Below, piece after piece: positions 11,140-33,944 of a stretch of DNA of 64,000 bases. The DNA comes from Macrostomum lignano (Eukaryota): positions 62,001 through 126,000 of the forward strand of contig NIVC01001357.1 of the NCBI GenBank assembly GCA_002269645.1, given 5' to 3'. Under the pieces are notes generated by a model, which worked only from the letters and a program-made list of their open reading frames with translations, was not told the DNA's origin and searched no databases. Position numbers and translations under genes: made by a program. Position 1 is the stretch's first letter, and each line of letters starts with the position of its first letter.

Positions 11140-11231
11140 CTAGGACTGCTGGGCGGAGTCCGCCGACTCAGCAATAGGCAGCACAGTGAACCGGCCGACG
11201 TGGGTAGCGCAACCGGAGCCCCGTCTGGCGC
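11140..11231 (-). CDS. wnk: Probable last coding exon of WNK, encoding the GRFTV (RFxV) SPAK/OSR1-docking motif
   Basis: Acceptor cattgtacag|GC in phase 1, matching the upstream donor phase; reads ARRGSGCATHVGRFTVLPIAESADSAQQS* as a GC-rich island in AT-rich DNA. Confidence 0.7.
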
Positions 11232-14200
11232 CTGTACAATGCGGGGGCGGAGTATTGTAATTGCTACTTACAGTAGCGCTGCCATGATTTCTGAATAAAC
11301 TGCAATCCGATAAAACAGAAAAAGTACACCAAATACAATAAATAAAGGACATATATAATAAGCAATTGGGTGAGGCTTGGTTTCATCTGATGAAGCTTAT
11401 GTTGATTCTGTGAAAATTCTGCTTTGGAAACGAAACAATTCTTCAAAGAAGCAACAACGACATAAGCGGAATTAGGTAGACATTGGCTAAGTAGGTGGTT
11501 GGCTGCGGTAAATAAAGGAGAATCATCACTTTAAGATTCATCACTTTTGCACCCCTGGATCTGCCTCTCGGCCCCACACTCCTTGAGAATCTCTCTCCCT
11601 TGAGGGATTGGGATTCTGGGATTGGGGATTGGGATTCTCGGATTCGGGTTTGGGATTCTGGGATTGGGGATTGGGATTCTCGGATTCGGGTTTGGGATTC
11701 TGGGATTGGGGATTGGGATTCTCGGATTCGGGTTTGGGATTCTCGGATTCGGGATTGGGATTCTCATGTTTCGGATCCGGATTCTCGGATTCGGGTTTGG
11801 GATTCTCAGATTCGGGATTGGGATTCTCAGATTCGGGTTTGGGATTCTCAGATTCGGGATTGGGATTCTCGGATTCGGGATTGGGATTCTCAGATTCGGA
11901 TCCGGATTCTCAGATTCGGGATTGGGATTCTCAGATTCGGGATTGGGATTCTCAGATTCGGGATTGGGATTCTCGGATTCGGGTTTGGGATTCTCAGATT
12001 CGGGATTGGGATTCTCAGATTTGGCATTGGGATTCTCAGATTCGGATCCGGATTCTCAGATTCGGATCCGGATTCTCAGATTCGGGATTGGGATTCTCAT
12101 GTTTCGGATCCGGATTCTCGGATTCGGGTTTGGGATTCTCGGATTCGGGTTTGGGATTCTCAGATTCGGGATTGGGATTCTCAGATTCGGGATTGGGATT
12201 CTCAGATTCGGATCCGGATTCTCAGATTCGGGATTGGGATTCTCAGATTCGGCATTGGGATTCTCAGATTCGGATCCGGATTCTCAGATTCGGGATTGGG
12301 ATTCTCATGTTTCGGATCCGGATTCTCGGATTCGGGATTGGGATTCTCAGATTCGGGATTGGGATTCTCATGTTTCGGATCCGGATTCTCGGATTCGGGT
12401 TTGGGATTCTCGGATTCGGGTTTGGGATTCTGGGATTCGGGATTGGGATTCTCGGATTCGGGTTTGGGATTCTCGGATTCGGGTTTGGGATTCTGGGATT
12501 CGGGATTGGGATTCTCGGATTCGGGTTTGGGATTCTCAGATTCGGGTTTGGAATTCTCAGATTCGGGTTTGGGATTCTCGGATTCGGGATTGGGATTCTC
12601 GGATTCGGGTTTGGGATTCTCAGATTCGGGTTTGGAATTCTCAGATTCGGGTTTGGGATTCTCGGATTCGGGTTTGGGATTCTGGGACTCGGGATTGGGA
12701 TTCTCAGATTCGGGATTGGGATTCTCATGTTTGGGATTGGGATTCTCAGATTTGGGATTGGGATTCTCAGATTTGGGATTGGGATTCTCAGATTTGGGAT
12801 TGGGATTCTCAGATTTGGGATTGGGATTCTCAGATTTGGGATTGGGATTCTCAGATTCGGGATTGGGATTCTCATGTTTGGGATCCGGATTCTTAGATCA
12901 CAAAATCACAAAACATGGGGCAGCTAAATTTACATAAACTTATTAACAATAGGCTAAGCATGCCAAATAAAATATTGCCTTTTTAATTAGCCAATACTTT
13001 AAATAAATCAACAAAAACGCTTTTTATAGCAGCGACTGAAAAATTGAAAAAGCAACTGCCCCAATCCGAGTAACAATACCTAGGCAACGTGAGCAAACCC
13101 AAAAAAGTCTCCGAGATGAAATCAGAGCAAAAAAACAGCCAGTGCTCAGGCCCTTAATCCTACGCATTTTTTTTCATTTCAAGAGTCGGTAGACGGCGGA
13201 ACTCTCGTCAGGCGCGTCGGTCGAACGGCCGCTGCCCCAGTTCCGCCTGCAAGCGACGCGTTGAAAGGAAAAACAATAATAAAAACACCAAGCCTACCGA
13301 TATGTATCGAAAAAACTGTTTCCGTAGCATTTTTTGTTTCAAATTCTAATCAAAGTCTAAGTCTAATAAACCAAAAGTTTCTCCATGTTTCACCTTTTCA
13401 GAAAAAAGCTGGTTTCTTAGAAACTGTAGCGACTTTCTAAGAAAAAGTTATATTTTTAAACACTGTGACTGTGATTCCATTACTCCGGGGAATAACAGCA
13501 AAATGAAATTATTTACAAAATGCCAACTACCTGAAAATAAAAACAATTTTCAACCATCCACGGGAGTGATTCTCAACCATCCACGGGAGTGATTCTCAAC
13601 CATCCACGGGAGTGATTCTCAACCATACACGGGAGTGATTCTCAACCATACACCGGAGTGATTCTCAACCATACACGGGAGTGATTCTCAACCATACACG
13701 GGAGTGATTCTCAACCATACACGGGAGTGATTCTCAACCATACACGGGAGTGATTCTCAACCATACACGGGAGTGATTCTCAACCATACACGGGAGTGAT
13801 TCTCAACCATACACGGGAGTGATTCTCAACCATACACGGGAGTGATTCTCAACCATACACGGGAGTGATTCTCAACCATACGCGGGAGTGATTCTCAACC
13901 ATACACGGGAGTGATTCTCAACCATACACCGGAGTGATTCTCAACCATACACGGGAGTGATTCTCAACCATACACGGGAGTGATTCTCAACCATACACGG
14001 GAGTGAGTCTCAACCATACACGGGAGTGATTCTCAACCATACACGGGAGTGATTCTCAACCATACACGGGAGTGATTCTCAGCCATACACCAGAGTGATT
14101 CTCAACCATACATGGGAGTGATTCTCAACCATACACGGGAGTGATTCTCAACCATACACGGGAGTGATTCTCAACCATACACGGGAGTGATTCTTAACCA

Positions 14201-17200
14201 TACACGGGAGTGATTCTCAACCATACACGGGAGTGATTCTCAACCATACACGGGAGTGATTCTCAACCATACACGGGAGTGATTCTCAGCCATACACCAG
14301 AGTGATTCTCAACCATACATGGGAGTGATTCTCAGCCATACACCAGAGTGATTCTCAACCATACACCAGAGTGATTCTCAGCCATACACCGGAGTGATTC
14401 TCAACCATACACCGGAGTGATTCTCAACCATACACGGGAGTGATTCTCAGCCATACACCGGAGTGATTCTCAACCATACACGGGAGTGATTCTCAAACAT
14501 ACATGGGAGTGATTCTCAACCATACAGCAATTCTCTTTAAACTGTTCAATAATCAGGTGTCAGCATAGAATTAGCCAGTATTCATAGTGTCCAATGGGCA
14601 CCACTTCATTTTAAGTATCTTTTAATACGCTCTGATACAGTGGCTGCATGAGAAACACACTAAAGGCAATGCTTACTTATGACATGCAAAGTTATGCTTA
14701 TTAATTTACTAAAACTACTAAAACGGTGTACCATGCAAATCTACTACGGGATATACACAAAATACCATAAATCTAGGCAAAATATAAATGCCTGTATAAT
14801 GCATCATATACTACTAAGTAGGCAATTAAGTGCATTCGAGTGCATTGCTGTCATCACACGTTCATGCTGCTGTCATTAGCTCGTAGCAATAAAAGACCAC
14901 GCACAAATCTAGCATTCTAGATTGTTGGTAACCATGGATACCGAGGCTTTTAAGAAGTTTTTGTACTTTAGGGACCAATGTTTCACAATGACAACCAACG
15001 GTGAATCTAAGGAAATCCCTGCCGCTAAAGGAATTCTATTCAAGAGATATGTTTGTTGCTATCCAAGGGAAACCCCAGTTTGTAATAGTATAAAAAGTCC
15101 CTGTTGCTAAGAGATAGTAGTATCCAAGGTGAGTTCCTGTTGCTAAGAGATAGTAGTATCCAAGGTGAGTTCCTGTTGCTAAGAGATAGTAGTATCCAAG
15201 GTGAGTTCCTGTTGCTAAGAGAGAGTAGTATCCAAGGTGAGTTCCTGTTGCTAAGAGATAGTAGTATCCAAGGTGAGTTCCTGTTGCTAAGAGATAGTAG
15301 TATCCAAGGTGAGTTCCTGTTGCTAAGAGAGAGTAGTATCCAAGGTGAGTTCCTGTTGCTAAGAGATAGTAGTATCCAAGGTGAGTTCCTGTTGCTAAGA
15401 GATAGTAGTATCCAAGGTGAGTTCCTGTTGCTAAGAGATAGTAGTATCCAAGGTGAGTTCCTGTTGCTAAGAGAGAGTAGTATCCAAGGGAAACTCCTGT
15501 TGCTAAGAGAGAGTAGTATCCAAGGGAAATCTATGTTGCTAAGAGAGAGAATAGTATCCAAAGGAATTTTCTGTCTCTAAGCGATACTGGTATCTAAGGA
15601 AAGCTAAATCCCTGTTGCTAATTGTTATTAGTATTCGAGGGAAATCCCTGTTGCTAAGTAATATTAGTATCCAAGGCAATTCTCTCTTGCTAAGTGATAT
15701 TAGTATCCAAGGGAAATCCTTGTTGCTAAGAGATAGTAGCATCCAAGGGAAATCCCTGTTGCGAATTGATATTATTATCCAAGGGAAATCCTATTTGCTA
15801 AGAGATAGTAGCACCCAAGGGAAATCCCTGTTGCTAAGTGATATTAGTATCCAAGGGAAATCCCTGTTGCTAAGTGATATTAGTATCCAAGGGAAATCCC
15901 TGTTGCTAAGTGATATTAGTATCCAAGGGAAATCCCTGCTGCTAAGTGATGTCAGTATCCAAGGGAAATCCCTGTTGCTGAGAGAGTAGTATCCGAGGTA
16001 AATCCCTGCTGCTAAGTGATATCAGTATCCAAGGGAAATCCCTGCTGCTAAGTGATATCAGTATCCAAGGGAAATCCCTGTTGCAATGCTGCTAAGACAA
16101 TAGGAACGAAATAAATCGGTAGTATGATTGCACCAGTTATTGATGGCATGGGCATGAAACTAAACTACACTACAAAAGCAAAATATTAACAAACTGGCAT
16201 GCCTGCTATGAAACAGAGGGCAAGAATCTCTATATAAAATTTGAGATATACCCATTGGCGAGTGACTGGGCGGGTTCAGCACTAGACGATCTGGCAACAA
16301 AGGTTGCTGGGATTCACTTGTATTAACTGATAACCATTCGTCTGAAATGCAAATAGTTTCATAGAAATACGAGCTGCGCTCAGATTTCAGATTTATCTAA
16401 ATCCCGTTGAGCAATATACACTCCATGATCAATACTCCCTACACACCCATGACCAATGCTCCCTAGACACCCCATGACCAATGCTCCCTACACACCCATG
16501 ACCAATGCTCCCTACACACCCATGACCAATGCTCCCTACACACCCATGACCAATGCTCCCTACACACCCATGACCAATGCTCCCTAGACATCCCATGACC
16601 AATGCTCTCACCACCCTCCCCAAACACGGACGGGCGCTCACCCAGGCCAGTGGGAGTGCCAGGTGCACCCTGGTCAGTCTCCACCCGTTGAACGTCGCCG
16701 CAGTCGGCACCGTTCGTCGCAGTCGCAGCCGATGCCGACGCCTGCACGGCGGACAGCACGGCTAGCACGTCTTCCAGACGCATCTGCGGCCCGCCATCGA
16801 AGGCCAAGCAGGTGACGGTGGTGGCCGGCGCCTGCGTTCCAGACGCACTCGGGCAGAGCAGAAGGCAACGCCCGGCCTCAAGTCCTGGCAGAGGCTGCGG
16901 TGGCAGGCCCGGCAAGAGCAGCTGAGCGGAGCCGGAGCTCATCGTTGTCCAGTGCTGCATGAGCCGCTGCTGGCTGAGCGGGTGAGCGGCTGTAGGCGTG
17001 GTCGGAGGCGCCGGCGACTCTGCTCGGCGCCGCTGCTGCTGCTGCTGATTGGCGCCGCTGCTTTCCTTCCGACAGCGGACCGCAGGCGAGACCGGCGCCG
17101 ACAGAGCCGCTTCGCCGGCGTCCAGAGACAGCAACAGCGGCGAGGATGGCAGGTCAGCAGAGACCGGCGCCACCAGCGATGACGTCACGGTGGCGGTCAC

Positions 17201-20200
17201 GGTGGCGTTCACAGAGGAACTTGAGATGACTGAAATTAATCCGAATGTGGGATCGTTCAAATAAGTTGCTCTTATAGGCACTCAGATCCCACACCGGGAT
17301 AAAATGGGGATCAATGGGAGCTAAGAGTCATTGAAATCCCACATTGGGATAAAATGGGGATCAATGGGAGCCAAGAGTCATTGAAATCCCACAATAGGAT
17401 AAAATGGGGATCAATGGGAGCTAAGAGTCATTGAAATCCCACAATAGGATAAAATGGGGATCAATGAGAGCTAAGAGTCATTGAAATCCCACATTGGGAT
17501 AAAATGGGGATCAATGGGAGCTAAGAGTCATAGAAATCCCACACCGGGATAAAATGGGGATCAATGAGAGCTAAGAGTCAACTAAACCCCACAATAGGAT
17601 AAAATGGGGATCAATGGGAGCTAAGAGTTATTGAAATCCCACATTGGGATAAAATGGGGATCAATGGGAGCTAAGAGCCCCTTAAATACCAAACCAGGAT
17701 AAAATGGGTTCAATGGGAGCTCAGTCACATACAATGATTTTGAATAAATATGAAATCCAACACTCACAAGAATTAGACGCTAAAAAGTCGTACTGAAGCC
17801 CGTTGCCATGGTGCTGCCCGTTCATAATGGCCGACATGGACGCAGACATGGCGGCTGGCAAGCTTTCTACCTGCGGCTGGTAGCCCGGACTGCCCGGCAC
17901 GCCAAAGTAGCCAAAGTTTTGATCAGCGGGCGCCTTTGGCGATTCGTTCAGCGGCTGCTCGCACAGACAGTCGGCCAGTTGCTGTTGCTGCTGCGGCTGC
18001 GAGTCGACCTGGCTGACCTGCCTGGAGACGGCCGCGGACGAAGGAGCCGTGACAGGCGAGGCCTGGCCTTGGCCGCCGCTGCCGCCGCCGCCCGCCTCCT
18101 CCTCCCAGCGCCCGTTGTAGTCGTCTCGCTCCTTGATGACGCGCCGTTTCGCTTCGGCCCATCGGCGCGCCTGCAGGCCGAGCCGAACGATGCAGGTGTC
18201 CAGCTCGCTGTCCTTCTCGGGCTCCGAGTCGCGGATCAGGTCCATGAAGTAGTTCCAGATGCCCGCTAGCACCTGAGCGATATTGTTTCAGATGGGGCTT
18301 GAATGTCTTGCAGTTATTGGATTGGGATAGATTAGCAATCCATTCTATCCCTAATCCACATGGGCTAGATTAGCAATCCATTCTATCCCTAATCCACATG
18401 GGCTAGATTAGCAATCCATTCTATCCATAATCCACATGAGCTAGATTAGCAATCCATTCTATCCATAATCCACATGGGCTAGATTAGCAATCCATTCTAT
18501 CCCTAATCCACATGGGCTAGATTAGCAATCCATTCTATCCCTAATCCACATGGGCTAGATTAGCAATCCATTCTATCCATAACCCACATGAGCTAGATTA
18601 GCAATCCATTCTATCCATAATCCACATGAGCTAGATTAGCAATCCATTCTATCCATAACCCACATGGGCTAGATTAGCAGTCCATTCTATCCCTAATCCA
18701 CATGGGCTAGATTAGCAGTCCATTCTATCCCTAATCCACATGGGCTAGATTAGCAATCCATTCTATCCCTAATCCACATGGGCTAGATTAGCAGTCCATT
18801 CTATCCATAATCCACATGAGCTAGATTAGCAGTCCATTCTATCCATAATCCACATGAGCTATATTATCCCAAGAATATCGCACCTTCTTCCGGTAGTACA
18901 GCAGTTGGTTTCTGACGCTGTTCACCACCTTCTGTCGCAGCCGACGCAGCTGATCGGCGCTGAGCCCCGGCGCGTCCGACTCGGCCAAATCGGCAAACGA
19001 ATTAACGACATTCTCCAAATCCTCATCGATGAAGCAGTCGAGCTGGAATTCGAATCCGACACCGGGCAGGATTCGCATCTGCTGCTGCAGCGCTCGATCG
19101 TTCACCACCAGACGAAAGTCGGCCACGTGATAGTAACGACCGGGATCGCCGACGTACTCGACGTCAGCCGACAAGGCCCGATGCCTGGCCGTCGAAGAAG
19201 TGCCAGATATTTGTTGCTGGGCGGCGGCTACCGTCGGTTGAGTCGGCGACACGGTATCCTCGTCCTGCCAGCGGACTGTCTGGGACAGGCGGACCAACTG
19301 CACCTGAACTGGGATCGGCTTCAGATTGAAGATTTGCAACGAGAGCAGCTCCTCGGAGGTGGGCCGGAAATCCGGCAGCGGATGCGTGCACGTGAAAAAT
19401 ATGTCCCGGATTTCCGGATTCTCCAGCCTGATTTGCAGAGAAGGCGGGTGGGATCGAATGCCTATGGATAATAGATGTTGAATAGATCACGAGACTAGTT
19501 GTCACCTAGACATTCAGCTGTCAACTAGTTGTCAACTAGATGATGACTAGATGCAAACTAGATCTAGATGATGACTAGATGCAAACTAGATCTAGATGAT
19601 GACTAGATGCAAACTAGATCTAGATGATGACTAGATGCAAACTAGATCTAGATGATGACTAGATGCAAACTAGATCTAGATGATGACTAGATGCAAACTA
19701 GATCTAGATGATGACTAGATGCAAACTAGATACTGACTAGATGCAAACTAGATACTGACTAGATGATGACTAGATGCAAACTAGATACTGACTAGATGCA
19801 AACTAGATGATGACTAGATGCAAACTAGATACTGACTAGATGCAAACTAGATACTGACTAGATGCAAACTAGATACTGACTAGATGCAAACTAGATGATG
19901 ACTAGATGATGACTAGATGCAAACTAGATACTGACTAGATGCAAACTAGATGATGACTAGATGCAAACTAGATACTGACTAGATGCAAACTAGATACTGA
20001 CTAGATGCAAACTAGATACTGACTAGATGCAAACTAGATACTGACTAGATGCAAACTAGATACTGACTAGATGATGACTAGATGCAAACTAGATACTGAC
20101 TAGATGATGACTAGATGATGACTAGATGCAAACTAGATACTGACTAGATGCAAACTAGATACTGACTAGATGCAAACTAGATACCGACTAGATGCAAACT

Positions 20201-23200
20201 AGATGATGACTAGATGCAAACTAGTTGCCAATCAATTCTCACCTGTTCAGCACCTGAGGCGGAGTGGTGCTAGCAATCCTTTGCCAGACATCCATAAAGT
20301 TCTGGCACTCCTGATACGGCACACAGTTGGTGACCAGCTCCACCATGAGCAGGCCAAAGGCGAATATGTCGACTTTCTCGTCGTATCGCTCCTGCAGCAT
20401 CTCCGGAGCCATGTAGCCCAGAGTGCCCAGCATGGTCTTGCGGCTCTGAGTCTTGGCAGTGGCCAGGCCGAAGTCGCCAATTTTGATGTTATAATATTCG
20501 TCAGGATTCTCGCCATCGGCTATGAACACGTTCTCCGGCTTGAGGTCGCGGTGGATCACTGGCGGGTTCATTCTGCGATTAAAGGAAATCGGCAAAATAG
20601 TTACAACTCATTAAAAGATATAAAAATATTTACGTGAAACTATTTAAACAAAGACCAGTCCTATATTGGAAAACCCAATATTCGTTTTGTTAATTCATGT
20701 TCAAATAATAAAGACTCTTTCTCCGGGATGAGACGAAGACTGATTCTGAAGTATTAAACAAAAACTTATTGAGAAACATGATGAAACTGACTTATTTAGG
20801 AGCACGATGAAACAAAGACCTATTTAGAAACATTATGAAACAAAGATCCATTTAGAAACACGAGGAAACAAAGATTCATTTAGAAACATGATGAAACAAA
20901 GATCCATTTAGAAACACGATGAGACTTATTTAGAAACACGATGAAACAATGACTCATTTAGAAACATGATGGAACAAAGACTTATTTATAAACACGATGA
21001 AAGACTCATTTAGAAACACGAGGAAACAAAGATTCATTTAGAAACATGATGAAACAAAGACTTATTTAGAAACATGATGAAAGACTTATTTAGAAACACG
21101 AGGAAACAAAGATTCATTTATAAACATAATGAAACAAAGACTTATTTAGAAACACGATGAAAGACTCATTTAGAAACACGATGAAACAAAGACTCATTTA
21201 GAAACACGATTAAACAATGACTCATTTAGAAACATGATGGAACAAAGACTCATTTAGAAACACGAGTAAACAATACTCATTTAGAAACATGATGGAACAA
21301 AGACTCATTTAGAAACACGAGGAAACAATGACTCATTTAGAAACATGATGGAACAAAGACTCATTTAGAAATACTCATGAAGACTCGTTGCTACGGATTA
21401 AACAAAAACTTATTTTTTATTTTACTTGCGCAAATACTGGTGATTTTTTAATAATAGAAATGCAGCATTATTTTGCTAAATAATGCAAATGAAATCAAAT
21501 AAAGCATGTTCAGTTCTAGGAGCTCAAAAATTCCATGAAGTGTAGCATTATTAATGAGCTAGTGAAGCCATGAGCAATGAGCCCAACCAACTAGTCAAGA
21601 AGACAAATAAATGCGCAATAGCAGGGTCAAAGCAACGCTTTGAAACTAACAAAATGGCCTAATAGTGCACAGTTGTAAAAAAACAACGCGCTCTCACAAT
21701 TTCTCGGCTGTAGTCACGCGACTTAGTTTATCTTCTCAATGCCTAAGACTGAGAAGACTGCACTGGTACGGCCTATAATGCAATAATCTATCTAAATATC
21801 TATCCAGTTTGATTTCAAGTGCGCAGTCTAGCTAAAAGAAATTCTTATCAATTATACAGCTAAAGAATTGTCGCCAAGCCCCCCCCCCAGCCCAAGGTGC
21901 AGAGTACAGGGACATGTACAACAGCCCTGGTTTATGTTTCATAACGTGTGTCATGACACACCAACTTTTAATTTTGGCATACTGAAATTTGGACTTTTGA
22001 ATTAAATTTTCATAATTTTATAATTATTGAGGATTCTTGGGATTTCTAGAATTATCTATGATTTTTCAAATTTGGCACCCTGTGTGAGCCGCTTAGGGGT
22101 CCTCCCAGCATTCAAAGGTCATAAACAACGAAATTAAAATATTTCACACACTTCAGTTGACAAACTGTCGATAATACAGAGACAAATAAGGGCAAAGCAA
22201 GTAAGCGGGGTGTTCAAAAGTAGCCTTATCACCATGAAATATTGAAGCAGAAATTTTGCAAATACAGTTTCAACTTAGGCTGGATTATTAGCCAGCGTGT
22301 GAATGTGAATGTGAATATTCGGGTTTTGGTCACCATGGCTTGTACAGATTCACAATTGTGAAGATTTTAAAGCTTTGGTTCCGTGAAGATTCGAGTTAGT
22401 AAGTATTTTTAGTGAAAATTCGGATTCGGGTTGGTGAAAATTTGGGTTGCAGATTCAGGTTGAAGATTCGGGTTGGTGAAGATTCGGGTTGGTGAGAGAT
22501 TCGGGTTGGTGAAGATTCGGGTTGGTGAAAATTTGGGTTGCAGATTCAGGTTGAAGATTCGGGTTGGTGAAGATTCGGGTTGGTGAGAGATTCGGGTTGG
22601 TGAGAGATTCGGGTTGGTGAGAGATTCGGGTTGGTGAAGATTCAGGTTGGTGAAGATTCGGGTTGGTGAAGATTCGGGTTGGTAAAGATTCGGGTTGGTG
22701 AAGATTCGGGTTGGTGAAGATTCGGGTTGCAGATTCAGGTTGAAGATTCGGGTTGGTGAGAGATTCGGGTTGGTGAGAGATTCGGGTTGGTGAAGATTCA
22801 GGTTGGTAAATAATCAGGTTGGTGAAGATTCGGGTTGGTAAATATTCAGTTTAGTGAAGATTCGGGTTGGTGAAGATTCGGGTTGGTGAAGATTCGGGTT
22901 GGTGAAGATTCGGGTTGGTGAAGATTCGGGTTGGTGAAGATTCGGGTTGGTGAAGATTCGGGTTGGTGAAGATTCGGGTTGGTAAAGAGTCGGGTTGGTG
23001 AAGATTCGGGTTAGTGAAGTGAAGATTCGGGCTGGTGAAGATTCAGGTTGGTGAAGATTCAGGTTGGTGAAGATTCAGGTCGGTGAAGATTCGGGTTGGT
23101 GAAGATTCGGGTTGGTGAAGATTCGGGCTGGTGAAGATTCGGGCTGGTGAAGATTCGGGTTGGTAAAGATTCGGGCTGGTGAAGATTCAAGTTAAAGATT

Positions 23201-25255
23201 TGAGTTGGTGAAGATTCAGTTTGATGAAGATTCAGTTTTTGAAGGTTTGTCTGGTGTTTGGTGATGATGAAGGTTAAATTTAAAGTTCAACAAAAGCATC
23301 TAAACCAAACTCACTTGTGATGCATGTGCCTCAGTCCCTCGAGAATCTGCTGCATCCAGGACTGAAACACGCTGAACTCAACCACAGCCTCTCTGGTCTG
23401 CTCATTATAGAAAGTCTTCATCTTCTCCTTGAGCGTGCCCTCGCTCATGAACTCGGTGACAATCACGGTGGCTTTCACTTTCTCGCCTCTCTCGCCGTTC
23501 TCGTCTAGTTCAAAATAGCAGTCGAGCAAGTCATAATAGCGGACTATGTTGGGGTGCTCGCACTTGATCATCATCTCCACCTGCGAGTTGGCGGGTTTGA
23601 GGTTAGCAATTTTTAGGATTGTGATTTTGAAGATTGGGATTCTAGAGATTGTGATTTTAGGGATTGGGATTTAAGGGATTGGGATTCTAGAGATTGTGAT
23701 TTTAGGGATGGGGATTCTAGGGATTCGGATTTTAGGGATTGGGATTTTAGGGATCGGGATTCTAGGGATTGTGATTTTAGGGATGGGGATTCTAGGGATC
23801 GGGATTCTAGGGATTGTGATTTTAGGGATTCGAATTTTAGGAATTCGGATTTTAGGGATTGGGATTCTAGGGATTGGGATTTTAGCGATTGGGATTCTAG
23901 GGATTGGTATTTTAGTGATTGGGATTCTAGGGATTGATATTTTAAGGATTAAGATCTTTAGGAAAGGGATTGTGAAGGATTATTTGTAAAAATTGTAGAG
24001 TCTCACAAAAAAGATAGGATCTCACCTCTTTGCGAACCTGATCCCTCTCGGCCGGTTTGTCCTTCCCAACCTGGTACTTGAGCTCGCACCAGGCTATGGG
24101 CCGGCCCTGCTCCCGATCGTAGCCCCTGTACACTCGTTTGTAGGCGCCTTCGCCGCACTTTAAATTATGCTTAATCCACCGGCCACACGGACTGACCGCG
24201 ATGCCCCGCTGCTTCAGCTGCAGCTCCATCTGGTGCCGGCGCCACATCTGCGCCTCGCGCCGGCGCTGCCTCTCTTTCTGTTTCTCCTCGCGCGACCTGC
24301 TGTGATGCGACTGCTGCTGCTGGGAAGAATTAGTAGACGATTGACGGGACAGCTTGACGTGAGGAGATGGCGGCTGTTGCTGCTGCTGTGGCTGCTGCTG
24401 CACCTGCGACTGAGCAGCCGCAGTTGACGACGCCTCCTCTGACGAAGAAGCAACAACAGCGCCGACGATGGAACCGACAGAGATTGTCGTAGCCGATACA
24501 GCAGGCGACGACGGCGAAGGCGATGTTGAAGCCGAGGCGAAGGTGCGAATCGCCGCAGCAGCAGCAGCAGCCGGCGGCGGCAGCGTCGGCATGGCAGTTG
24601 TTGCCAAGCTGATGTCGCCATTGACAACCAGAACTGGCGGCTCGGCAACCCCGGCAGGCGATACGGAGGGAGCGGCCGGCAACTCAGGGCAGGACTCGTC
24701 CGCCTGCGGCGCCACAACAACGACAACTCCGGTGGTGGGAACTGCTGTAGACGTCGTCGGGTCGCCGTCGTTGTCGTCTTTGCTGTCGACCATCAGCCGC
24801 GGCGGCGCCTCCTTCGAAGACGAACTGGCAGCAGAGTCGGCGGCGTCGGCGCCAGAGCTGCCAGGCGGCGCCATTCGATGCGCTGGCTGCGGCTCCGTCA
24901 GCGACAGCCTTCGGATTCTGCCAAGGAGATGAGGGGAGCGGGAAGGAAATTAGAAATTTCCCAATTTAAAAGTTTAGAGCTGCAAAGGCGAAACACTTGC
25001 GATTGCAGCTCAGCTGTAAGGCGCCCGACTCTCCAATAGCTCAATAACTTTGCGGCCTACCCCCCAAGGCGCAGAGAGTGTACATGCCAGAAAGTCAAGG
25101 CCGCTGTACACCCTGTGTGAGCGCGTGCCTGCGTACATATCTGTGCGTGTCTTCAGGAGTCAGCGGAATGGGCTTGACGACTGACAAACCCACTAACTAA
25201 CTAACTGACTAACTGACTGACTGACTGACTAACTGACTGACTGACTGACTGACTG

Positions 25256-25302
<47 letters not shown>

Positions 25303-27300
25303 GACTAACTAACTAACTAACTGACTAACTAACTAACTAACTAACTAGCTAACTAACTAACTAACTAACAAGCTAGTTACCTAACTAATATATTAACTAA
25401 CTGTTCAATTAACTAACAAATAACTAATACTCTATGCACGTCTTACCAAGTGGAAACTAAAATATTTGCCAATGCAGTCCCTTGACAATTTATTGTTTAA
25501 CGCTAAGTGAATCTCTTTAAATCTGTGTTTATTTGTTTAGTGGCAAAATTAGGCCAGTTAATGGCTTGGACAGCCGCAGGTATTTTTATAACCTAAAGCA
25601 AAGCGCCGGGCACAGAGGCAGGGGAGTAGGGGGCGGATTGGGGTCAACTGCTCTCGCCACTCCCGCAGTCCAGTCAAGTTCGCTGAGTGCAATGGGCAAA
25701 GGTAGGCCGGAGGTGTGAATAGGGATACTTTGACCGATATATACTACTAGCAGCGGTAAGTATAGCTTTATTCTGGAAGGAATATATTAATAAATACAAT
25801 TCTTTATTGCTCGATATATAAGGGGCCAATACTTTCACTAGCTGGGAGCTAGGTCTGAAAACCAATTAAACAGATTGGATAATATAAAGGTTATGGTTGA
25901 TTAACTTTGCTGACTACAAAGTGTTCGGATTATGAAGTTAGGGGGTCATAGAATTAGGAGATTATGGAGAAGGGAATCATGAGGAGAGATAGAAGCAGGG
26001 GATTATGAAGTAGTTTATTATGAAGCAGGGGATTATGAATTAGGGGATTATGAAGTAGGGGATTCTGAAGTCGGGGATTCTGAAGTCGGGGACTATGAAG
26101 CAGGGGATTATGAAGTAGAGGATTATGAAGTAGGAGATCATGAAGCAAGGGATTATGAAGTAGGGGATTATGAAGTAGGGGATTATGAAGCAGGGGATTA
26201 TGAAGTAGGGGATTATGAAGCAGGTGATCATGAAGCAAGTGATTATGAAGTAGTTTATTATGAAGCAGGGGACTATGAAGCAGGGGATTATGAAGTAGGG
26301 GATCATGAAGCAAGGGATTATGAAGTAGGGGATTATGAAGTAGGGGATTATGAAGTAGGGGATTATGAAGTAGGGGATTATGAAGTAGGGGATTATGAAG
26401 TAGGGGATTATGAAGTAGGGAATTATGAAGTAGGGGATTATGAAGCAGGGGATTATGAAGCAGGTGATTATGAAGTAGGGGATTATGAAGTAGGGGATCA
26501 TGAAGCAAGGGATTATGAAGTAGGGGATTATGAAGTAGGGGATCATGAAGCAAGGGATTATGAAGTAGGGGATTATGAAGTAGGGGATTATGAAGTAGTT
26601 TATTATGAAGCAGGGGATTATGAAGCAGGGGATTATGAAGTAGTTTATTATGAAGCAGGGGATTATGAAGCAGGGGATTATGAAGTAGGGGATTATGAAG
26701 CAGGTGATCATGAAGCAGAGGATTATGAAGCAGTTTATTATGAAGCAGGGGATTATGAAGCAGGGGATTATGAAGCAGTTTATTATGAAGCAGGGGATTA
26801 TGAAGCAGGGGATTAGGAAGCTTGCTGCTTGAGTTTCAGGACCATTAAGTTTGGGGAATACGAATATTATGTACTATGAGGTAAACTCACTCAACAAGCC
26901 GACAAGCTGAGTAGGAGCCGCTGTTAGACCCGCTAGCGGAATCATCTAACAGAGTTTCCCTGATTGTCACCCGTTTGCGCAGCACCCGAGGGCCGCCGCC
27001 AATGCTTGAGCGCAGCGCACTCCTGCCAGGCGGCGGCAGGGGCGGCGGCGGCGGCGCAGGTGGAGGCGGTGGCGGCAGCCGAACAATCGCCGAGGTTGGC
27101 GTCACAGCCGGCGTGTTGCACGGCGGCTCCGTGGCCGAGCGGCACCAGCCGTTGCTGTCAGCCGATGCGGCCGGCGCTAGCAGCAGCGGAGGCGTCGACG
27201 TCAAATAAGGCGGCTGCGGCGACGGCAACGCAGCCGACGTAGACGACGCAGAGGTCAGGCCGAGCGGCCTCGACGGTGGGCTATCAGCGCCGTGCGCCAT
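11140..27300 (-). CDS. wnk: WNK (with-no-lysine) Ser/Thr kinase, ~1238 aa; complement exons 27300-26891, 24917-24026, 23580-23315, 20572-20243, 19427-18884, 18272-17768, 17229-16642, 16341-16252 (tentative), 11231-11140 (tentative)
   Basis: Subdomain I GEGAYKRVYRG carries the relocated Lys and subdomain II is IAWCEL (Cys at the usual Lys position), the WNK hallmark. Also HRDLKPEN, KIGDFGLAT and YMAPE, plus a post-kinase PF2/CCT-like segment (FRLVVND...GFEFQLDCFIDEDLENVVNSF). All junctions are GT-AG with matching phases (2,0,2,2,0,1,1,1), and the summed length of 3717 nt is divisible by 3. The terminal exon encodes an RFxV motif. The last two exons are less certain. Confidence 0.88.
11595..12895. 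repeat. 21-bp G-rich minisatellite (GGGATTGGGATTCTCAGATTC and variants) in the last WNK intron
   Basis: Directly visible; explains pseudo-ORFs at 11531-12937. Confidence 0.96.
13550..14525. repeat. 23-bp minisatellite (GGAGTGATTCTCAACCATACACG), ~42 copies
   Basis: Directly visible, highly homogeneous. Confidence 0.97.
15040..16085. repeat. 36-bp minisatellite with a homogeneous block (GTTGCTAAGAGATAGTAGTATCCAAGGTGAGTTCCT x10, 15104-15480) grading into more diverged GGGAAATCCCTGTTGCTAAGTGATATTAGTATCCAA units
   Basis: Directly visible. Confidence 0.95.
16430..16612. repeat. 24-bp minisatellite (ACACACCCATGACCAATGCTCCCT), ~7 copies, next to the WNK exon 7 donor
   Basis: Directly visible; gives the REHWSWVC tail of ORF 16463-17281. 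Confidence 0.92.
17285..17720. repeat. 50-bp minisatellite (ATCCCACATTGGGATAAAATGGGGATCAATGGGAGCTAAGAGTCATTGAA), ~8.5 copies, WNK intron 6
   Basis: Directly visible. Confidence 0.94.
18330..18860. repeat. 38-bp minisatellite (GATTAGCAATCCATTCTATCCCTAATCCACATGGGCTA), ~14 copies, WNK intron 5
   Basis: Directly visible. Confidence 0.95.
19490..20228. repeat. CTAG-rich 22/28-bp minisatellite (GACTAGATGCAAACTAGATACT / GATGACTAGATGCAAACTAGATCTAGAT), WNK intron 4
   Basis: Directly visible. Confidence 0.95.
20770..21380. repeat. ~28-31-bp degenerate minisatellite (ATTTAGAAACACGATGAAACAAAGACTC), WNK intron 3
   Basis: Directly visible. Confidence 0.9.
22420..23250. repeat. 16-bp minisatellite (GAAGATTCGGGTTGGT), ~50 copies, WNK intron 3
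   Basis: Directly visible. Confidence 0.95.
23600..23985. repeat. 15-bp minisatellite (GGGATTCTAGGGATT/GGGATTTTAGGGATT), WNK intron 2
   Basis: Directly visible. Confidence 0.92.
25040..25185 (+). repeat. Dispersed hairpin-forming repeat, copy A (internal stem partly deleted)
   Basis: GGCGCAGAGAGTGTACATGCC..AGAAAGTCAAGGCCGCTGTACACCCTGTGTGAGCG matches copies at ~44590-44720 (-), ~45420-45620 (-) and ~59690-59805 (+). Confidence 0.8.
25190..25420. repeat. (CTAA)n/(CTGA)n tetranucleotide microsatellite
   Basis: Directly visible. Confidence 0.95.
25960..26822. repeat. 15-bp minisatellite (TAGGGGATTATGAAG), ~56 copies, WNK intron 1
   Basis: Directly visible; explains the PLLHN/IIPYF pseudo-ORFs. 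Confidence 0.96.
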
Positions 27301-27899
27301 CTTACATGAAGACTGCAACATTACAAATTTGGGCTGCTATATTCGCTAGTAAGCTACTGTCAGTAGGCTAAATTGAATGAATATTATATTCTACATTTCT
27401 ACGTCTCTTGAAGTCATAAAATCAAACTGTTTGAAAAAAATATTCACTTTAAAACCAGCAATGTCAAGCCGACTGTTAAAGTTCTGGCAAGGCTTGATTT
27501 GGCCCACTCATCTAATTAATAAAGTTTAGCAAATTAATATGCAAACTAATTGCTCGCAAGCCAGTTAGAATACGAAGTTAATGAGAAAGGAACAGCGACA
27601 GAACGAGACACCCTGGAGAAGCCCTGGATCATACATCATTACCCACAGACACCTAGCAGCCTAGACCGGACCCCAGTCAGGAAGTCGGCAATATTAAAAT
27701 GCTCATTTTTCCCGAAAGCCTGCCACAAGGGTAATGCAATTAAGCTAAGGCGAACGAATTGCTTTGCTAAACAGTTAAGACATGGGGTCTTAGCCAAGTC
27801 ACGTGGGCGAGCGCTTGTACCAAATTTGTGGCACGTAGCTGTAAAATTAGAGAATATTTATTTGTCGTCTAGCGAACTGGAGAACTACTCAGTGCTTTC

Positions 27900-28885
27900 T
27901 GCGGGACTAGCAGACTGAGATATCTCAACTATGGGATTTTTTCTACGAGACTAGAGGACTCAAATATCTTAATTATGGGATTCTCTCTGTGGGACTAGCA
28001 GACTGAGATATCTCAACTATGGGATTTTTTCTAGGAGACTAGAGGACTCAAATATCTTAATTATGGGATTCTCTCTGTGGGACTAGCAGACTGAGATATC
28101 TCAACTATGGGATTTTTTCTACGAGACTAGAGGACTCAAATATCCCAACTATGGGATTCTCTCTGTGGGACTAGCGGACTCAAATATCCCAACTATGGGA
28201 TTCTTTCTGCGGGACTAGCGGACTCAAATATCCCAACTATGGGATTCTTTCTGTGGGACTAGCAGACTGAGATATCTCAACTATGGGATTTTTTCTACGA
28301 GACTAGAGGACTCAAATATCCCAACTATGGGATTCTCTCTGTGGGACTAGCGGACTCAAATATCCCAACTATGGGATTCTTTCTGCGGGACTAGCGGACT
28401 CAAATATCCCAACTATGGGATTCTTTCTGCGGGACTAGCGGACTCAAATATCCCAACTATGGGATGCTTTCTGCGGGACTAGCGGACTGAAATATCTCAA
28501 CTATGGGATGCTTTCTGCGGGACTAGCGGACTGAAATATCTCAACTATGGGATGCTTTCTGCGGGACTAGCGGACTGAAATATCTCAACTATGGGATGCT
28601 TTCTGCGGGACTAGCGGACTGAAATATCTCAACTATGGGATGCTTTCTGCGGGACTAGCGGACTGAAATATCTCAACTATGGGATGCTTTCTGCAGGAAT
28701 AGCGGACTGAAATATCTCAACTATGGGATGCTTTCTGCAGGAATAGCGGACTGAAATATCTCAACTATGGGATGCTTTCTGCGGGACTAGCGGACTGAAA
28801 TATCTCAACTATGGGATGCTTTCTGCGGGACTAGCGGACTGAAATATCTCAACTATGGGATGCTTTCTGCAGGACTAGCGGACTC
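27900..28885. repeat. 44-45-bp minisatellite (GGGACTAGCGGACTCAAATATCCCAACTATGGGATTCTTTCTGC), ~22 copies with dimeric higher-order units at the left end
   Basis: Directly visible; lies upstream of the first WNK coding exon (acceptor ttgcag at 27313), so probably in a 5'UTR intron. Confidence 0.95.
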
Positions 28886-31023
28886 ACATTTAACAAATTC
28901 TCTAGTGTGAATTATCAAACTCAATTCTTTCAACTCATTTTTAAACGGGGACAACTTCAATTTTGAACTAGTAAAAATTAAAATAGAATTACGCCGTACT
29001 AATTGAACGACACTACGAAAGATTCCCACTGAGTATTTCGTACAAAAAAACTGCTAACTTAATAGTTCATTTAAAACAGAGGATAGATTGCATATTATAC
29101 GTGATATAAACCATATGGTGCAAAATTTTATTTTAGTTATAAAATCGTTACGAAGGCGCACGCAGTGGCAGTCTGCCAGCCAGTAAGCTGAGCACTATGC
29201 TCTATGCCTATGCGTACAGAATCTGAAATCAGCAGCCGCCACCACGCGGCAATTAATTTCATCGGATCCTGCTAGCCCTCGGCACAGATCCAGCCCAGAG
29301 GCTTGCCCCCCCCCCAACCAGCTGATGGATCGATCAGCTCTGTCTGCCTGCTGCTACCGGAGCGCTTCTAAAGGCCGTTCTCTGCAGGCTATCCAAAACT
29401 GACTGATTAAAACAGTTCAGTTCTCCACAACACGGCGCGGAACATAATGACTAACAGCTACTGGTGTACTTTTAAAAAGTACCGCAGCAACCAACTCTTT
29501 AGTGCGTCTGTTTCCTCACTCTACCTCTGTTGCCATTGGCATGCGTGAATGAGCTTTTGACTTTTGGCATGCACTATTTGGCTAGCTAAGCCATGCAGTC
29601 GACGACTGAACACCCGAAACAATAATTAAAAAGCAATGGTTGCGAGAGTGAGCATTGGTAATCCAGGCAAGGCGAGTTGGCAGCGTGCAATGCACACGGC
29701 GACTGGCCCTCCTTCCCCTGGCTATTCAATTGCGAGGTTCCGAAACCACCTGCTTATCGGGTAACGTCTAACAGATTTAGTAAGGAGAGTTTGCGGACAG
29801 TACAAGTCAACTACGCTCTCAGTGTATAGCTTAATTCTGGTCGCACACGTAGCAACAATAATTTCGGAGTGTGGAAGCTCCGGCTAGATTGAGCTGAGCT
29901 CTGCTGACTCTCTCCGGACACTATTCTATCTCGGGACTCAAGACAAAATGCGAGGTTCCTTCTTGACAACCGATACAGAACAAATTGGATATCTTGGGAC
30001 CCACGATGAGCGCAAAGGAAGCAAAGCTGCTATCTTGCAAAACGCTTCGGAACCTTCTAGTCTCGAAATCACAAATAAGATCCAAAAGAAAGACTTGACA
30101 CCGATTTGCTATCTCAGAATCCACAACTGTAAACTACTACTCGAACGAGACACGGGCGTACCTACGTGTCAGGCAAAAATTAAAAGAGGCAAGCGGCTAA
30201 ATGTCAGCAGCAAAATTTGTTTAAAGAAAATAGACTGTCACCCATACGGCTAGGAGAGTTAAACAATTTTCTTGCATAAACAAAAAACCAATACCACTGC
30301 AGCTTAAGCCTACCTTACACAACAGAAACCAATCACGTGTAGTTTTGAGGAATCCCACGAGGACGGGAGGACAGAAAGTTCGCTGGAACTAAAATGTCAC
30401 TAGAGGAAGCGCGCTGATGCCAGATGGAGAGAAAACGCACGGAAACAAATAGAAAATTGCTGCCAAACCAAAACTGCGCTATTGCGTTGCGAATGCTCAG
30501 CAGTATTCATGCACTGGCAAATTCTACGGAGTCAAACTACAAGCTCGTAATAGCACTGCGAATTGGTAGAAACCCGAAACCAGCTAGCATAATAGTGCGC
30601 ATAACGGCAGGACTACGCGACTCGCAGTAACGAACAAGCGGTTGCCTGGGTTGCAAATAGGAGAGTAAATGCAGCTCGATCAACGAATTTCCTAACAATT
30701 ACTATCCACATACTAACATTCACAAGACCCATGCATTGAAATTTCAGACAACAGTGTTGAAGTATGCTTAAATCAATTAAGAACATTAAAAGTAAAAGTA
30801 AAAGCTCCAATTGAAAGCTCCGATTGAATTAAAAGTACATCGCTAGGGAGAAGTACCATTTTTGTCGAATCCGTTAGATCATGCGACCGCTATGGAAGCT
30901 CCTATGCTTGCTACCATGTAGAATAGTAGCTCCAACGCAGATATAAGCTAGACTAACATGCAGCTAAATGCGGAATAGCAATAGAAATACATTTATTTAT
31001 CACAAGCGCCGCTACTTGTGCCA

Positions 31024-31303: not shown

Positions 31304-33944
31304 TTAACCCCGCCAACACTGATGGCACGCCAGGCGTGCCATGGGTCTCATTTAACCATACACTGATATATTCCTGCACGGTCACGAGTGCGGGAATGAC
31401 ATCTGCACGAGTGCGCGCTAGCGCACGAGTGCACGATGTCCTTCACGCACGAGTGAACGTGAAGGAATTCCATTGTCGGATGATTCATCGTGCAGGAATG
31501 CACAAAACCGTGCAGGAATGCATTTCTGCGCCTAATGCTTTTTCAGTGAGATTTTACCATAGACATCCATTCCTGCACGCAAAAGAGTGCAAGAATGCCA
31601 TTCTTGCATGGAAAATCAGCCGACAATGAGAATACGTGTCTATGGCCCAGATGGTTTAGCATAAATATGACTTTTCGACATCCCCATAAGTCACGGATGG
31701 CATGCTGTGCGTACCATGTTATTGTTTCGCAATTTTTTAACTATATTTGACTGCAAGTACAGGATAGATATCAAAAACTTTAAAAGCGGACAACAAAAGA
31801 ACAAAAAACAATTAGGTAAACAATATTTAAAAACTCGATGAGGCATTTAGGAGGAGCGTTTTGAATTTCGTATTCTGAACGTAATTAAGTTTTGCACCGT
31901 ACCACCAGTGCAACTACTGTGCTGCTGCAGTGTGCCAATTCTGAAAGCATGGGACAGCACACAGCCCGGGCTCTCCTGGGCAACCAGCGCATACGAACAC
32001 CGTTCTTTTGGCCACACCATTGCTGTAGCAGACTCTGCATCGCTTTGTCGGCCTTGCATTGCCATCTGTCGGCGGCAGCTTTGATGGCGCATGCTATGAG
32101 ACAGCCCTGCGCTTCGATGTATTCAAACGTTTGCCCTGGCCTGTCTGCTCCATGAGAGTGCGGATCGCAGCTTCCAAAAATTCAACGAATTTGATTTTCC
32201 TTCCTCTTTGGCAGTTGCAGATCCAGGCATTGCGGACCAACTGCAGCAAAATGTGGAACCCGAGCTTCTGGTGCCATCTGTATGTTCTTCTCCCCGCACT
32301 GTAAGGCGCTGCAGTGCTGCATCAAGGCAATCAATGCCTCCCATGTACTTATTGTACCGCAGCACCGAATTCGGCTTTAAAGCTGACTCCTCCGCTCCGC
32401 CTCGGATCACTCGCCTCACTTCTGTGCTTTCAGCAACACCGTGCGTGTTCAACAAGTACACAGTTTTGCGACCGCTTGCCTTCCTGTCTACAAGCCTGAC
32501 TGTGAGAACATCGCCGCGGCGCATCTGGGAGTGACTGACGGGTTGCAGGGGCAGCACTTTCAGCTCATTCGGCACACCTCGATTGGGGCTCACCGTCCCA
32601 GTCAGTAAACTACTGCGTTCCAGCAGAAACTGCGCCAGACGGAGCGATGTGAACCAGCTGTCACAGAAGACCTTGTGCCCCAGGTCCAGCAAATTTTTAC
32701 TCAATTCAACGACGATCTTCTCGCTCATCGACAAATTCCCGCAGTTTAATCCATCTCCAAACTTGTCGTTATCCTGCTTAACAGCATGTACATGAAAGTT
32801 CCACAGAAAACCTGTCGAAACTTCCGTCAAGCAGTAGACCTTGATGCCGAATCTGTCACGCTTGTTGGGCATGAACTGCCGGAAAATGAGCCTGCTCTTG
32901 TACATGACCAGTTTCTTCATCGACAGACACCTCTTGACTTGGGCTGTAATTTGCTTGGCAAATATCGCGGGCAATGTTAAGAAAAGGTTGAATCTTTTTC
33001 AAGGAGTCCTGGTGGTTGACCGTGGTGCAGTCGTAAAATCGAAGGAATGATAATATCTGCACAAACCGATCCCTTCCAAGGCAATGTTCTTTCTGGAAGT
33101 ATTCGCCGCCGTAGAAGTCTCCCGTGGACCAGTACATGTGCATTTCGGGCTTCTTCACAAGACACATGTACAGAACGATTGCTAGAGACTTCTTCACCTC
33201 ATTGTCGGTACACGGTCTCCAAGTTGATAGCAAATTGGGAAGAGCTCCGTCCTGATCTTCAGCTGTCAAATGTTGAAGCTCCATGTCAGCTCGGGCGTTG
33301 GTCCAGATGCGAATGGCAGACACCAGATCAGCGGTGAGAAAGTGCTGCAGATAGAATTGCACCTGGCCCATTTTACCCTCAGGAGCTTTGCTTGGATGTC
33401 TGGGTTCAGGCCAGGCACAGCGAGGAATTCGGGCAGATCGTTGAGACGCAAATCTTCACCATCTTGAGCAGCTGTCCATTCATCCTCGTTAGCGAACTCG
33501 ACTCCATGCTCAGCTACTTCCGCATTATTCTCACCATCTTCCTCGTCCAGCAACTCTCCATCGACATTCGCTGTCGCTGCCATCGCTGGTGAAAACAGGG
33601 GACCTTCCATATTGCAATTGCAGCCTTGTCAATATTGTTAACCATTTTGAGTCTTGTGTAAGTTGAATTAATTATACAGTAAAGTTCGAAAAGTTTGTGG
33701 TATCAGGAAAAATTTACTGCATGATTCTGTACTGTTTTTACCATAGACAGTTTTAAAATAAACTGTAGTATCAGTCAAGCACAAATTTTAGGACAGTTGG
33801 AACTCAATAGTTAAGTAAGCCAGTCAGTAGTCTATGGGAATTTCTTGAGCCGTTAATTGACACAGTGCTCTGTGGTAGTGGGAAAGAGATTGAAGCCCCG
33901 TGGCATGCCATCCGTCAATAAGCTCAGTGCGCTACTGGTTTTAA
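31304..33944 (-). mobile_element. piggyBac-family DNA transposon, decayed copy (~2.6 kb)
   Basis: The left end is TTAA|CCCCGCCAACACTG followed by the palindrome ATGGCACGCC-A-GGCGTGCCAT. The putative right end has a partial inverted match (CCCCGTGGCATGCCATC...CAGTG...|TTAA at 33941-33944). An internal DDD transposase is present, and the size fits piggyBac. The right boundary is uncertain. Confidence 0.8.
31914..33610 (-). pseudogene. piggyBac (PGBD4-like, DDE_Tnp_1_7-type) transposase pseudogene
   Basis: Consecutive ORFs give an acidic N-terminus, FLTADLVSAIRIWTNARA, VSVDE, YKSRLIFRQFMPNKRDRFGIKVY, VFCDSWFTSLRL, YNKYMGGIDCLD, RRTYRWHQKLGFHILLQLVRNAW and a Cys-rich tail (KRCRVCY...VCAGCPGEPGLCC..CFQNWH). 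Disrupted by about 4 frameshifts (near 33375, 32915, 32300, 31950) and an in-frame TAG near 32090. Confidence 0.92.

Follow-up and report, generated by a model that had tools for sequence, protein, structure and literature searches.

Among intracellular chloride sensors, the WNK kinases are the best understood; they have lately also been recognised as potassium and osmotic sensors, and the residues by which they sense are nearly invariant from plants to humans. The present analysis concerns a WNK gene of Macrostomum lignano, a free-living marine flatworm, in which two of these positions are naturally substituted. The gene lies on the minus strand of a 64,000-nucleotide stretch of genomic DNA (contig NIVC01001357.1, positions 62,001 to 126,000; hereafter the window, to whose numbering all coordinates refer). 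A preliminary description, made from the letters of the window, had pointed to a WNK kinase with DFG in place of DLG in an aquatic invertebrate, which M. lignano indeed is, and had predicted this kinase to be insensitive to chloride.

In rat WNK1, the backbone amides of G370 and L371 were found to bind chloride, and F283, L299, L369 and L371 form the walls of the pocket around it (PMC7606576). The substitution L369F activated the kinase and lowered its chloride sensitivity, the corresponding WNK4 L322F was constitutively active and Drosophila WNK L421F was chloride-insensitive in vivo (PMC7606576). Likewise, WNK3 L295F was chloride-insensitive, and the role that the preliminary description had given to this leucine agrees with both of these sources (PMC13397483). 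A second position of interest is E388, which touches K351 of the catalytic loop and lies next to both the best-validated site for potassium and a network of conserved waters; WNK1 E388A and WNK3 E314A and E314Q displayed the activity of the wild type, with reduced sensitivity to chloride, water and potassium, and a WNK3 L295F/E314Q construct is included in the plasmid list of the same study (PMC13397483). WNK4 responds at about 10 mM chloride and WNK3 at about 150 mM, despite identical pockets (PMC7606576), and the four pocket side chains alone therefore do not set the sensitivity.

No account of a natural DFG WNK, or of flatworm WNKs with DFG or lacking E388, was found in the literature searched, and for flatworm WNKs and Smp_154440, their Schistosoma representative, this literature yielded only a table of the schistosome kinome and an RNAi screen in planarians that names 'wnk1', without sequence. 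The gene itself is already annotated, being uncharacterised in M. lignano, automatically named WNK1 or WNK4 in parasites and classed as Other/WNK in the schistosome kinome. The existence of the gene is thus known, and the ion-site pattern of flatworm WNKs was not found described in the literature searched.

Ion-Sensing Sites of the Flatworm WNK

Mammalian WNK1, WNK3 and WNK4 (rat WNK1 structures 6CN9, 4Q2A and 5DRB) were found to be the best sequence match of the M. lignano protein, with about 42% identity over the whole kinase domain. The features held in common are the glycine-loop lysine, the beta3 cysteine, the HRD aspartate, the DxG aspartate, L371, the activation-loop phospho-acceptor (Thr for Ser382) and an RFxV-type motif in the C-terminal region. 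The M. lignano protein differs in having DFG for DLG, HRDLKPEN for HRDLKCDN and GTLGYMAPE for GTPEFMAPE (P387L, E388G), in the exchanges F283Y, L299I and Y420V, in insertions in the beta4-beta5 region and before the DFG, and in the lack of a Pfam OSR1_C match. The motif KIGDFGLAT was confirmed, on the minus strand, where 20475-20467 reads GAC TTC GGC and encodes D563, F564 and G565 inside YYNIKIGDFGLATAKTQSRKTMLGTLGYMAPE, and these three residues align with D368, L369 and G370 of WNK1.

The ion sites were tabulated for about 270 WNK-family domains, in which flatworm sequences were counted only where the site was covered and the others numbered 247. At WNK1 position 369, Phe was found in all 22 flatworm sequences, whereas the others carried Leu (235/247), Phe (8/247) or Met (4/247), a distribution far removed from chance. 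These eight Phe and four Met exceptions were mostly non-metazoan-looking WNK-like domains; DLG is typical of the WNK family, but not universal. Position 388 was Gly in 20 of 20 flatworm sequences and Glu in 244 of the 247 others, plants to humans, and the preceding position 387 was Leu, Val or Phe in flatworms and Pro in all but one of the others (246/247). In the remainder of the pocket, position 283 is Tyr in Macrostomum (Y456, in IVRYYD, 23547-23530) and Cys in Neodermata, against Phe in 232 of the 247 others; position 299 is Ile in flatworms (I481, in ATVIVTE, 23472-23452 of the M. lignano gene), against Leu or Phe in 234/247; and position 371 is Leu in flatworms and in other WNKs alike. 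The chloride-pocket residues of the gene (283/299/369/371) are accordingly Y/I/F/L, compared with the canonical F/L/L/L. Y420 (Val here) and E419, close to the water and potassium networks, likewise differ from other WNKs. Taken together, the flatworm clade differs from essentially all other WNKs by F283Y/C, L299I, L369F, E388G (GTPEF to GTxGF/Y) and the loss of the catalytic-loop Cys.

The substitution at 388 lies in the activation segment (20439-20401), which reads KTMLGTLGYMAPE and does not match the typical WNK segment KSVIGTPEFMAPE with its Ser382 and Glu388. The phospho-acceptor is kept as T576 (ACC, 20436-20434), which aligns with the autophosphorylation site S382 of WNK1, while P387 has become Leu and E388, the equivalent of WNK3 E314, has become Gly (G582, GGC, 20416-20418). 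Upstream of it, the catalytic loop is HRDLKPEN (20553-20530), compared with the typical HRDLKCDN and with HRDLK(A/S)(D/E)N in the neodermatan orthologues. Both departures had been listed correctly in the preliminary description, which had missed the link of the activation segment with ion sensing, E388G being the second desensitising position.

When compared with the engineered WNK1 L369F, WNK4 L322F, WNK3 L295F, Drosophila WNK L421F, WNK1 E388A and WNK3 E314A/Q, the flatworm protein was found to be naturally Phe at 369 and without Glu at 388, the same pair of sites as in the WNK3 L295F/E314Q construct, so that it is a natural counterpart of that double mutant. The flatworm change differs from the engineered ones in being natural and fixed throughout the phylum, in carrying Gly rather than Ala or Gln at 388 and in being accompanied by further pocket changes.

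Phe or Met at the 369 position of an otherwise WNK-type domain, as in the flatworm clade, also occurs naturally in a few WNK-like kinases, with DFG in P0057, P0060, P0070, P0085, P0086, P0089, P0094 and P0096 and DMG in P0051, P0079, P0080 and P0204. Unlike the flatworm clade, these kinases keep HRD(L/I)KC(D/N)N, GTPE(F/Y)MAPE with its E388, and F283; they mostly carry Asn at the beta3 position, the non-metazoan type, and were unrelated to the flatworm clade in a neighbour-joining (NJ) tree. They come from metagenomes and JGI data, and would be useful additional natural variants for studies of chloride sensing.

Family Membership and Orthology

The gene encodes a WNK-family Ser/Thr kinase, as had been proposed. 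In a phmmer search of PDB sequences, its kinase domain scored 196-202 bits against WNK1 and WNK3 and only 82-86 bits against the next kinases (PKR, NEK2/7, MST3 and CDPK1), PKR being the top non-WNK match with 86 bits. The matches in the large database that ranked below the flatworm clade were all WNKs, and the identity was 38-43% to metazoan WNKs, compared with 30-33% to plant WNKs. The two motifs put forward in the preliminary description as WNK hallmarks, GEGAYK and IAWCEL, are both real, but are located two exons upstream of the DFG (24154-24080). The lysine of GEGAYK (Lys404, 24154-24137) aligns with K233 of WNK1, and a glycine-loop lysine was present in 20 of the 24 flatworm sequences, the other four being gapped or truncated there. 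The canonical beta3 lysine of VAIK is absent, and the cysteine of IAWCEL (Cys421, 24097-24080) aligns with C250 of WNK1; this residue is Cys in metazoan WNKs and in the flatworm clade, and Asn in plant and protist WNKs. The catalytic set is complete (HRD, the catalytic-loop Lys and Asn, the helix C Glu, the DFG Asp, APE and the activation-loop Thr), so that the kinase should be catalytically active. A pseudokinase of the NRBP type was set aside on the presence of all these catalytic residues.

After M. lignano itself, the closest matches were all from platyhelminths (Cichlidogyrus, Protopolystoma, Rodentolepis, Schistocephalus, Echinostoma and Clonorchis), with 45-53% identity, above every canonical WNK. 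An exhaustive HMMER search with a profile of this clade, covering 1.84 billion representative proteins, gave eight matches of 375-849 bits, below which the scores levelled off with ordinary WNKs, at 315 bits at most. Seven of the eight carry organism names, all of them flatworms (Dicrocoelium, Paragonimus, S. japonicum 'WNK4', Echinococcus 'WNK1', Mesocestoides, Clonorchis 'WNK1' and M. lignano), and the eighth is P0125; no clade member outside the flatworms was found in this search, with seven of the eight top matches named. P0129 and P0130, scoring just under the clade, are a protist multi-kinase protein and a bird PAK-like protein, one each, and were excluded, their matches being due to low-complexity sequence or to general kinase similarity. 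In the NJ tree, the clade was recovered with a bootstrap of 100/100, on a long branch joining the base of the metazoan WNKs and not among the spiralians. Its members share the motifs GEG(A/G)YK, (I/V)AWCE(L/F), HRDLKx(D/E)N, GDFGLA and R(K/Q)TMLGTxG(F/Y)MAPE, together with an upstream basic coiled coil and a post-kinase (F/L)EF(Q/D)LD block, and the window gene fits all of these features.

Schistosoma Smp_154440 and the Echinococcus, Clonorchis and S. japonicum proteins named WNK1 or WNK4 belong to the same clade as the M. lignano gene. The N-terminal basic coiled coil, the DFG, the post-kinase block, (R/K)FTV and a ..LDDVLxLL.. motif are shared with proteins of the Smp_154440 type, which read GEGGYK...VAWCEF and RKTMLGTxGFMAPE. 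The neodermatan orthologues are 2000-2500 aa long, compared with 1215 aa in M. lignano, with a kinase-domain identity of 46-49%, and they carry C283, Q301 and HRDLK(A/S)(D/E)N where Macrostomum has Y283, T301 and HRDLKPEN. In the part of the schistosome kinome source covered here, Schistosoma haematobium and S. mansoni present a single Other/WNK row (Sh_Smp_154440.1/Smp_154440.1, PTHR13902), whose printed sequence is of the DFG type and for which the supplement gives one paired entry each from fly, mouse and worm (Stroehlein et al. 2015, PMC4669435). A further entry, C_01296, labelled 'unclassified WNK1-like', was found to be a fragment of the Smp_154440 gene, and no HRDLKCDN or IGDLGLA sequences occur in the covered part of the supplementary text (PMC4669435). 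In M. lignano, the WNK-like proteins among the matches listed were of the DFG type in five of five cases. The fly and worm entries that the schistosome supplement pairs with Smp_154440 are those that we take to be Drosophila Wnk and C. elegans wnk-1, and a separate entry is paired with accessions that are presumably mouse OXSR1 and C. elegans gck-3.

Since the DFG form is conserved across Platyhelminthes and is the only WNK entry in the covered part of the schistosome kinome, a flatworm orthologue is likelier than an extra paralogue, and the earlier wording 'this paralogue' is probably wrong. The comparison of sequences indicates that the window gene is, with good confidence, a divergent flatworm WNK orthologue, duplicated in M. 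lignano.

Predicted Ion Insensitivity and Alternative Explanations

The pattern of substitutions suggests, as the reading somewhat favoured here, a flatworm WNK that chloride, and probably also potassium and water, would inhibit weakly or not at all. The kinase would autophosphorylate Thr576 of its activation loop and would pass its signal to a kinase of the SPAK/OSR1/Fray type, docked via the C-terminal RFTV motif. Phe564 would occupy the hydrophobic halide pocket, and Gly582 would leave the activation loop without the glutamate linking it to the catalytic loop, to the potassium site and to the conserved network of waters; with both changes in place, the inactive ion-bound state would be poorly stabilised, leaving little or no inhibition by chloride and probably little by potassium or water. 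Activity would then be set otherwise, for instance by expression, partners or the long C-terminal region. Chloride insensitivity is considered a well-motivated prediction. The wider suggestion that Platyhelminthes may have one WNK type only, a natural equivalent of L369F and E388(A/Q) with further pocket changes, is more tentative and is put forward with some doubt.

If the prediction holds, the WNK-SPAK/OSR1 pathway of flatworms, including parasitic flukes and tapeworms, would not be gated by intracellular chloride or potassium as it is in vertebrates and flies, and the kinase would be constitutively self-activating or under a different input, a natural experiment on the purpose of the ion brake. 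A phylum in which two validated desensitising positions are substituted and fixed would imply that a lineage can lose or rewire the ion brake of this kinase and still retain the kinase itself. The exchanges F564L and G582E are ready-made revertants with which chloride, potassium and water sensing could be separated. Pharmacological interest is added by an active site unlike that of the host at the DFG, the catalytic loop and the P+1 loop, with orthologues in schistosomes, tapeworms and liver flukes.

Several observations weigh against the favoured reading as a whole, orthology included. G370 and L371, whose backbone amides bind chloride, are both kept; in Neodermata the small Cys at 283 may make up for the volume of the bulky Phe at 369, a swap that would preserve the halide pocket; and WNK paralogues with identical pockets differ more than ten-fold in chloride sensitivity (PMC7606576). 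Trematodes have KFTV, not RFTV, and the CCT-like domain described below is a candidate unsupported by Pfam, by a PDB profile search and by a low-confidence AlphaFold2 (AF2) model with its Foldseek search. The basal long-branch placement fits long-branch attraction and equally an old paralogue, and the evidence from M. lignano comes from best matches only, collected without a taxon filter, so that a canonical DLG WNK may exist there. The points on the pocket, including the retained chloride ligands, the size swap and the separation of WNK4 from WNK3, would suit an orthologue whose pocket has been remodelled (Y/C283, I299, F369) and continues to accommodate chloride or a different anion, maybe with a shifted affinity, and in which E388G is compensated elsewhere and the DFG is neutral or co-evolved. 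This explanation is held to be rather unlikely, for the change from Leu to Phe alone sufficed in four different WNKs (PMC7606576, PMC13397483), Macrostomum pairs F369 with a Tyr at 283 that is larger, not smaller, and two independent desensitising positions are altered together, both fixed throughout the phylum. The position of the clade in the tree, with the sampling of M. lignano through best matches, leaves room for a different arrangement, in which Macrostomum would keep a chloride-sensitive DLG WNK for SPAK/OSR1-CCC and the DFG kinase would be an extra paralogue, neofunctionalised towards another substrate (GTLGY P+1 loop, HRDLKPEN); P387 and E388, P+1 residues nearly invariant elsewhere, are changed here, which could shift substrate choice. 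Such a paralogue is judged improbable, given that Smp_154440 stands as the only WNK in the covered part of the schistosome kinome, paired there with single fly, mouse and worm entries (PMC4669435), that all five of the listed M. lignano proteins are of the DFG type, and that both Cys250, specific to metazoans, and the RFTV motif near the C-terminus are kept; moreover, with the clade not found outside flatworms among the 1.84 billion representatives, an old paralogue would need loss everywhere else.

The notion that TTC is a sequencing or assembly error, or that the locus is a decaying pseudogene, can be practically dismissed. The spliced model assembled here extends over 27321-11140 on the minus strand and comprises eight open exons encoding 1215 aa, with GT-AG at all borders and no frameshift or internal stop. 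The locus corresponds to the M. lignano UniRef entries A0A1I8GJT5 (P0126) and A0A1I8GZD7 (P0270), both named 'Protein kinase domain-containing protein'. The independent model P0270 was identical to the spliced model across the last 860 residues, the final exon included, and P0126 showed two residue differences, neither at the DFG, where Phe is present. A second M. lignano protein, P0001, presumably the homeologue of the window gene, is 82% identical overall and 91% in the kinase domain, and also reads KIGDFGLAT. As the Phe is found in the homeologue, in the annotated models and in 22 of 22 flatworm sequences, from Macrostomorpha to Neodermata, the TTC codon is not an assembly error, the eventuality that the preliminary description had named in advance as fatal to its claim; the Phe is genuine.

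Exon Structure and Regions outside the Kinase Domain

The kinase domain is spread over exons 2 to 5, all on the minus strand. Exon 1 (26891-27321, aa 1-144) encodes a Pro/Ser-rich N-terminus as an open reading frame (ORF) with a 100% match to P0126 over 141 aa; its start ATG lies at 27321, with an alternative ATG at 27300, and its donor is GTGAGT. Exon 2 (24026-24917, aa 144-441) encodes a low-complexity region, then the basic coiled-coil stretch EEKQKERQRRREAQMWRRHQMELQLKQ (24289-24209), kept in all flatworm orthologues in the alignment, and then the start of the kinase domain with the glycine loop and IAWCEL. Within this exon, 216 nt at 24290-24505 (72 aa, PAVSATT...SHHSRS) are in frame and open and are missing from P0126 and P0270; the edges of this gap are without GT-AG and a GTCG direct repeat stands on both sides; the difference reflects an indel allele or else an artefact of the gene models. 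Exon 3 (23315-23580, aa 442-530) covers helices C to E of the kinase and contains IVRYYD and ATVIVTE. The interval 20243-20572, to which the kinase was originally assigned, was found to be exactly one exon, exon 4 (aa 530-640), with the acceptor ending in aatcgcag and the donor beginning with gtgaga, and it holds the catalytic loop, the DFG, the activation segment and helices F-G. This interval is coding on the minus strand, where the ORF across it translates as NPPVIHRDLKPENVFIADGENPDEYYNIKIGDFGLATAKTQSRKTMLGTLGYMAPEMLQERYDEKVDIFAFG, and its plus-strand translation is stop-ridden. Exon 5 (18884-19427, aa 640-821) contains the end of the kinase domain (LSLQIF, 19345-19328), followed by a post-kinase segment.

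The post-kinase block FRLVVNDR...GVGFEFQLD (19117-19037), in exon 5, is a candidate CCT-like/PF2-like segment. A likeness to the two central strands of the CCT-like/autoinhibitory domain of WNKs was seen in a short hhalign match, in which the flatworm block was aligned with WNK CCT-like-1 with a probability of 79% and an E value of 1.6e-5, over 36 columns only (FRLVVNDR..GFEFQLD against IxLxLRVxD..AIxFxFDL). No match to Pfam OSR1_C (PF12202) was obtained after the kinase domain even at E = 10, and no PDB entry was matched when a profile of the flatworm block was searched. The AF2 model of this block was of low confidence (pLDDT 62), with a beta-beta-alpha-alpha order, and nothing below E = 1 was found with Foldseek against the PDB. 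The kinase-domain AF2 model, made from a seven-sequence alignment, was unusable (pLDDT 40), and no structural claim rests on either of the two models. In cestodes, an extra conserved block, RYIIRITRLERESEGCD...LSFRCNL, may be a second CCT-like domain; none was noticed in M. lignano.

Exon 6 (17768-18272, aa 822-990) is helical and of low complexity, and extends the conserved post-kinase block. Exon 7 (16642-17229, aa 990-1186) is of low complexity, with the motif MRLEDVLAVLSAVQ, which is common to the neodermatan orthologues of 2000-2500 aa. Exon 8 (11140-11231, aa 1186-1215 and the stop codon) carries the C-terminal GRFTVL (11196-11179), the single RFxV-type motif of the protein, 13 residues from the C-terminus, which is predicted to be a docking motif for the CCT domain of SPAK/OSR1; at the same position, GNRFTVVS is found in cestodes and (S/N)KFTVVPV in trematodes. 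Despite their length, the neodermatan orthologues (P0121-P0128) share with exons 7 and 8 the tail islands (L/F)(E/D)D(V/I)LxLL and (R/K)FTV.

The WNK gene lies in very repeat-rich DNA. Each of its introns (window 11600-28900) holds a different long minisatellite array, with periods of 11-50 bp and lengths of up to about 1.3 kb. Tandem Repeats Finder (TRF) gave 36 high-scoring rows over the 64-kb window, although overlapping rows can describe the same array, and numerous long 'ORFs' of the window are minisatellite repeats read in frame.

Other Features of the Window

Three further features were recorded. On the plus strand, 52661-54058 is an ORF of 465 aa, rich in Pro, Ala and Ser, with one hydrophobic stretch (LALAALPLALVAALARL) and no Pfam match. 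A piggyBac-type transposase (Pfam DDE_Tnp_1_7) lies at 32123-33371 on the minus strand across two overlapping ORFs, and is probably a frameshifted, inactive copy. Also on the minus strand, 3260-4732 is a single ORF of 490 aa, encoding an Sp/KLF-like protein with three C-terminal C2H2 zinc fingers and long Ala, Gly and Gln runs.

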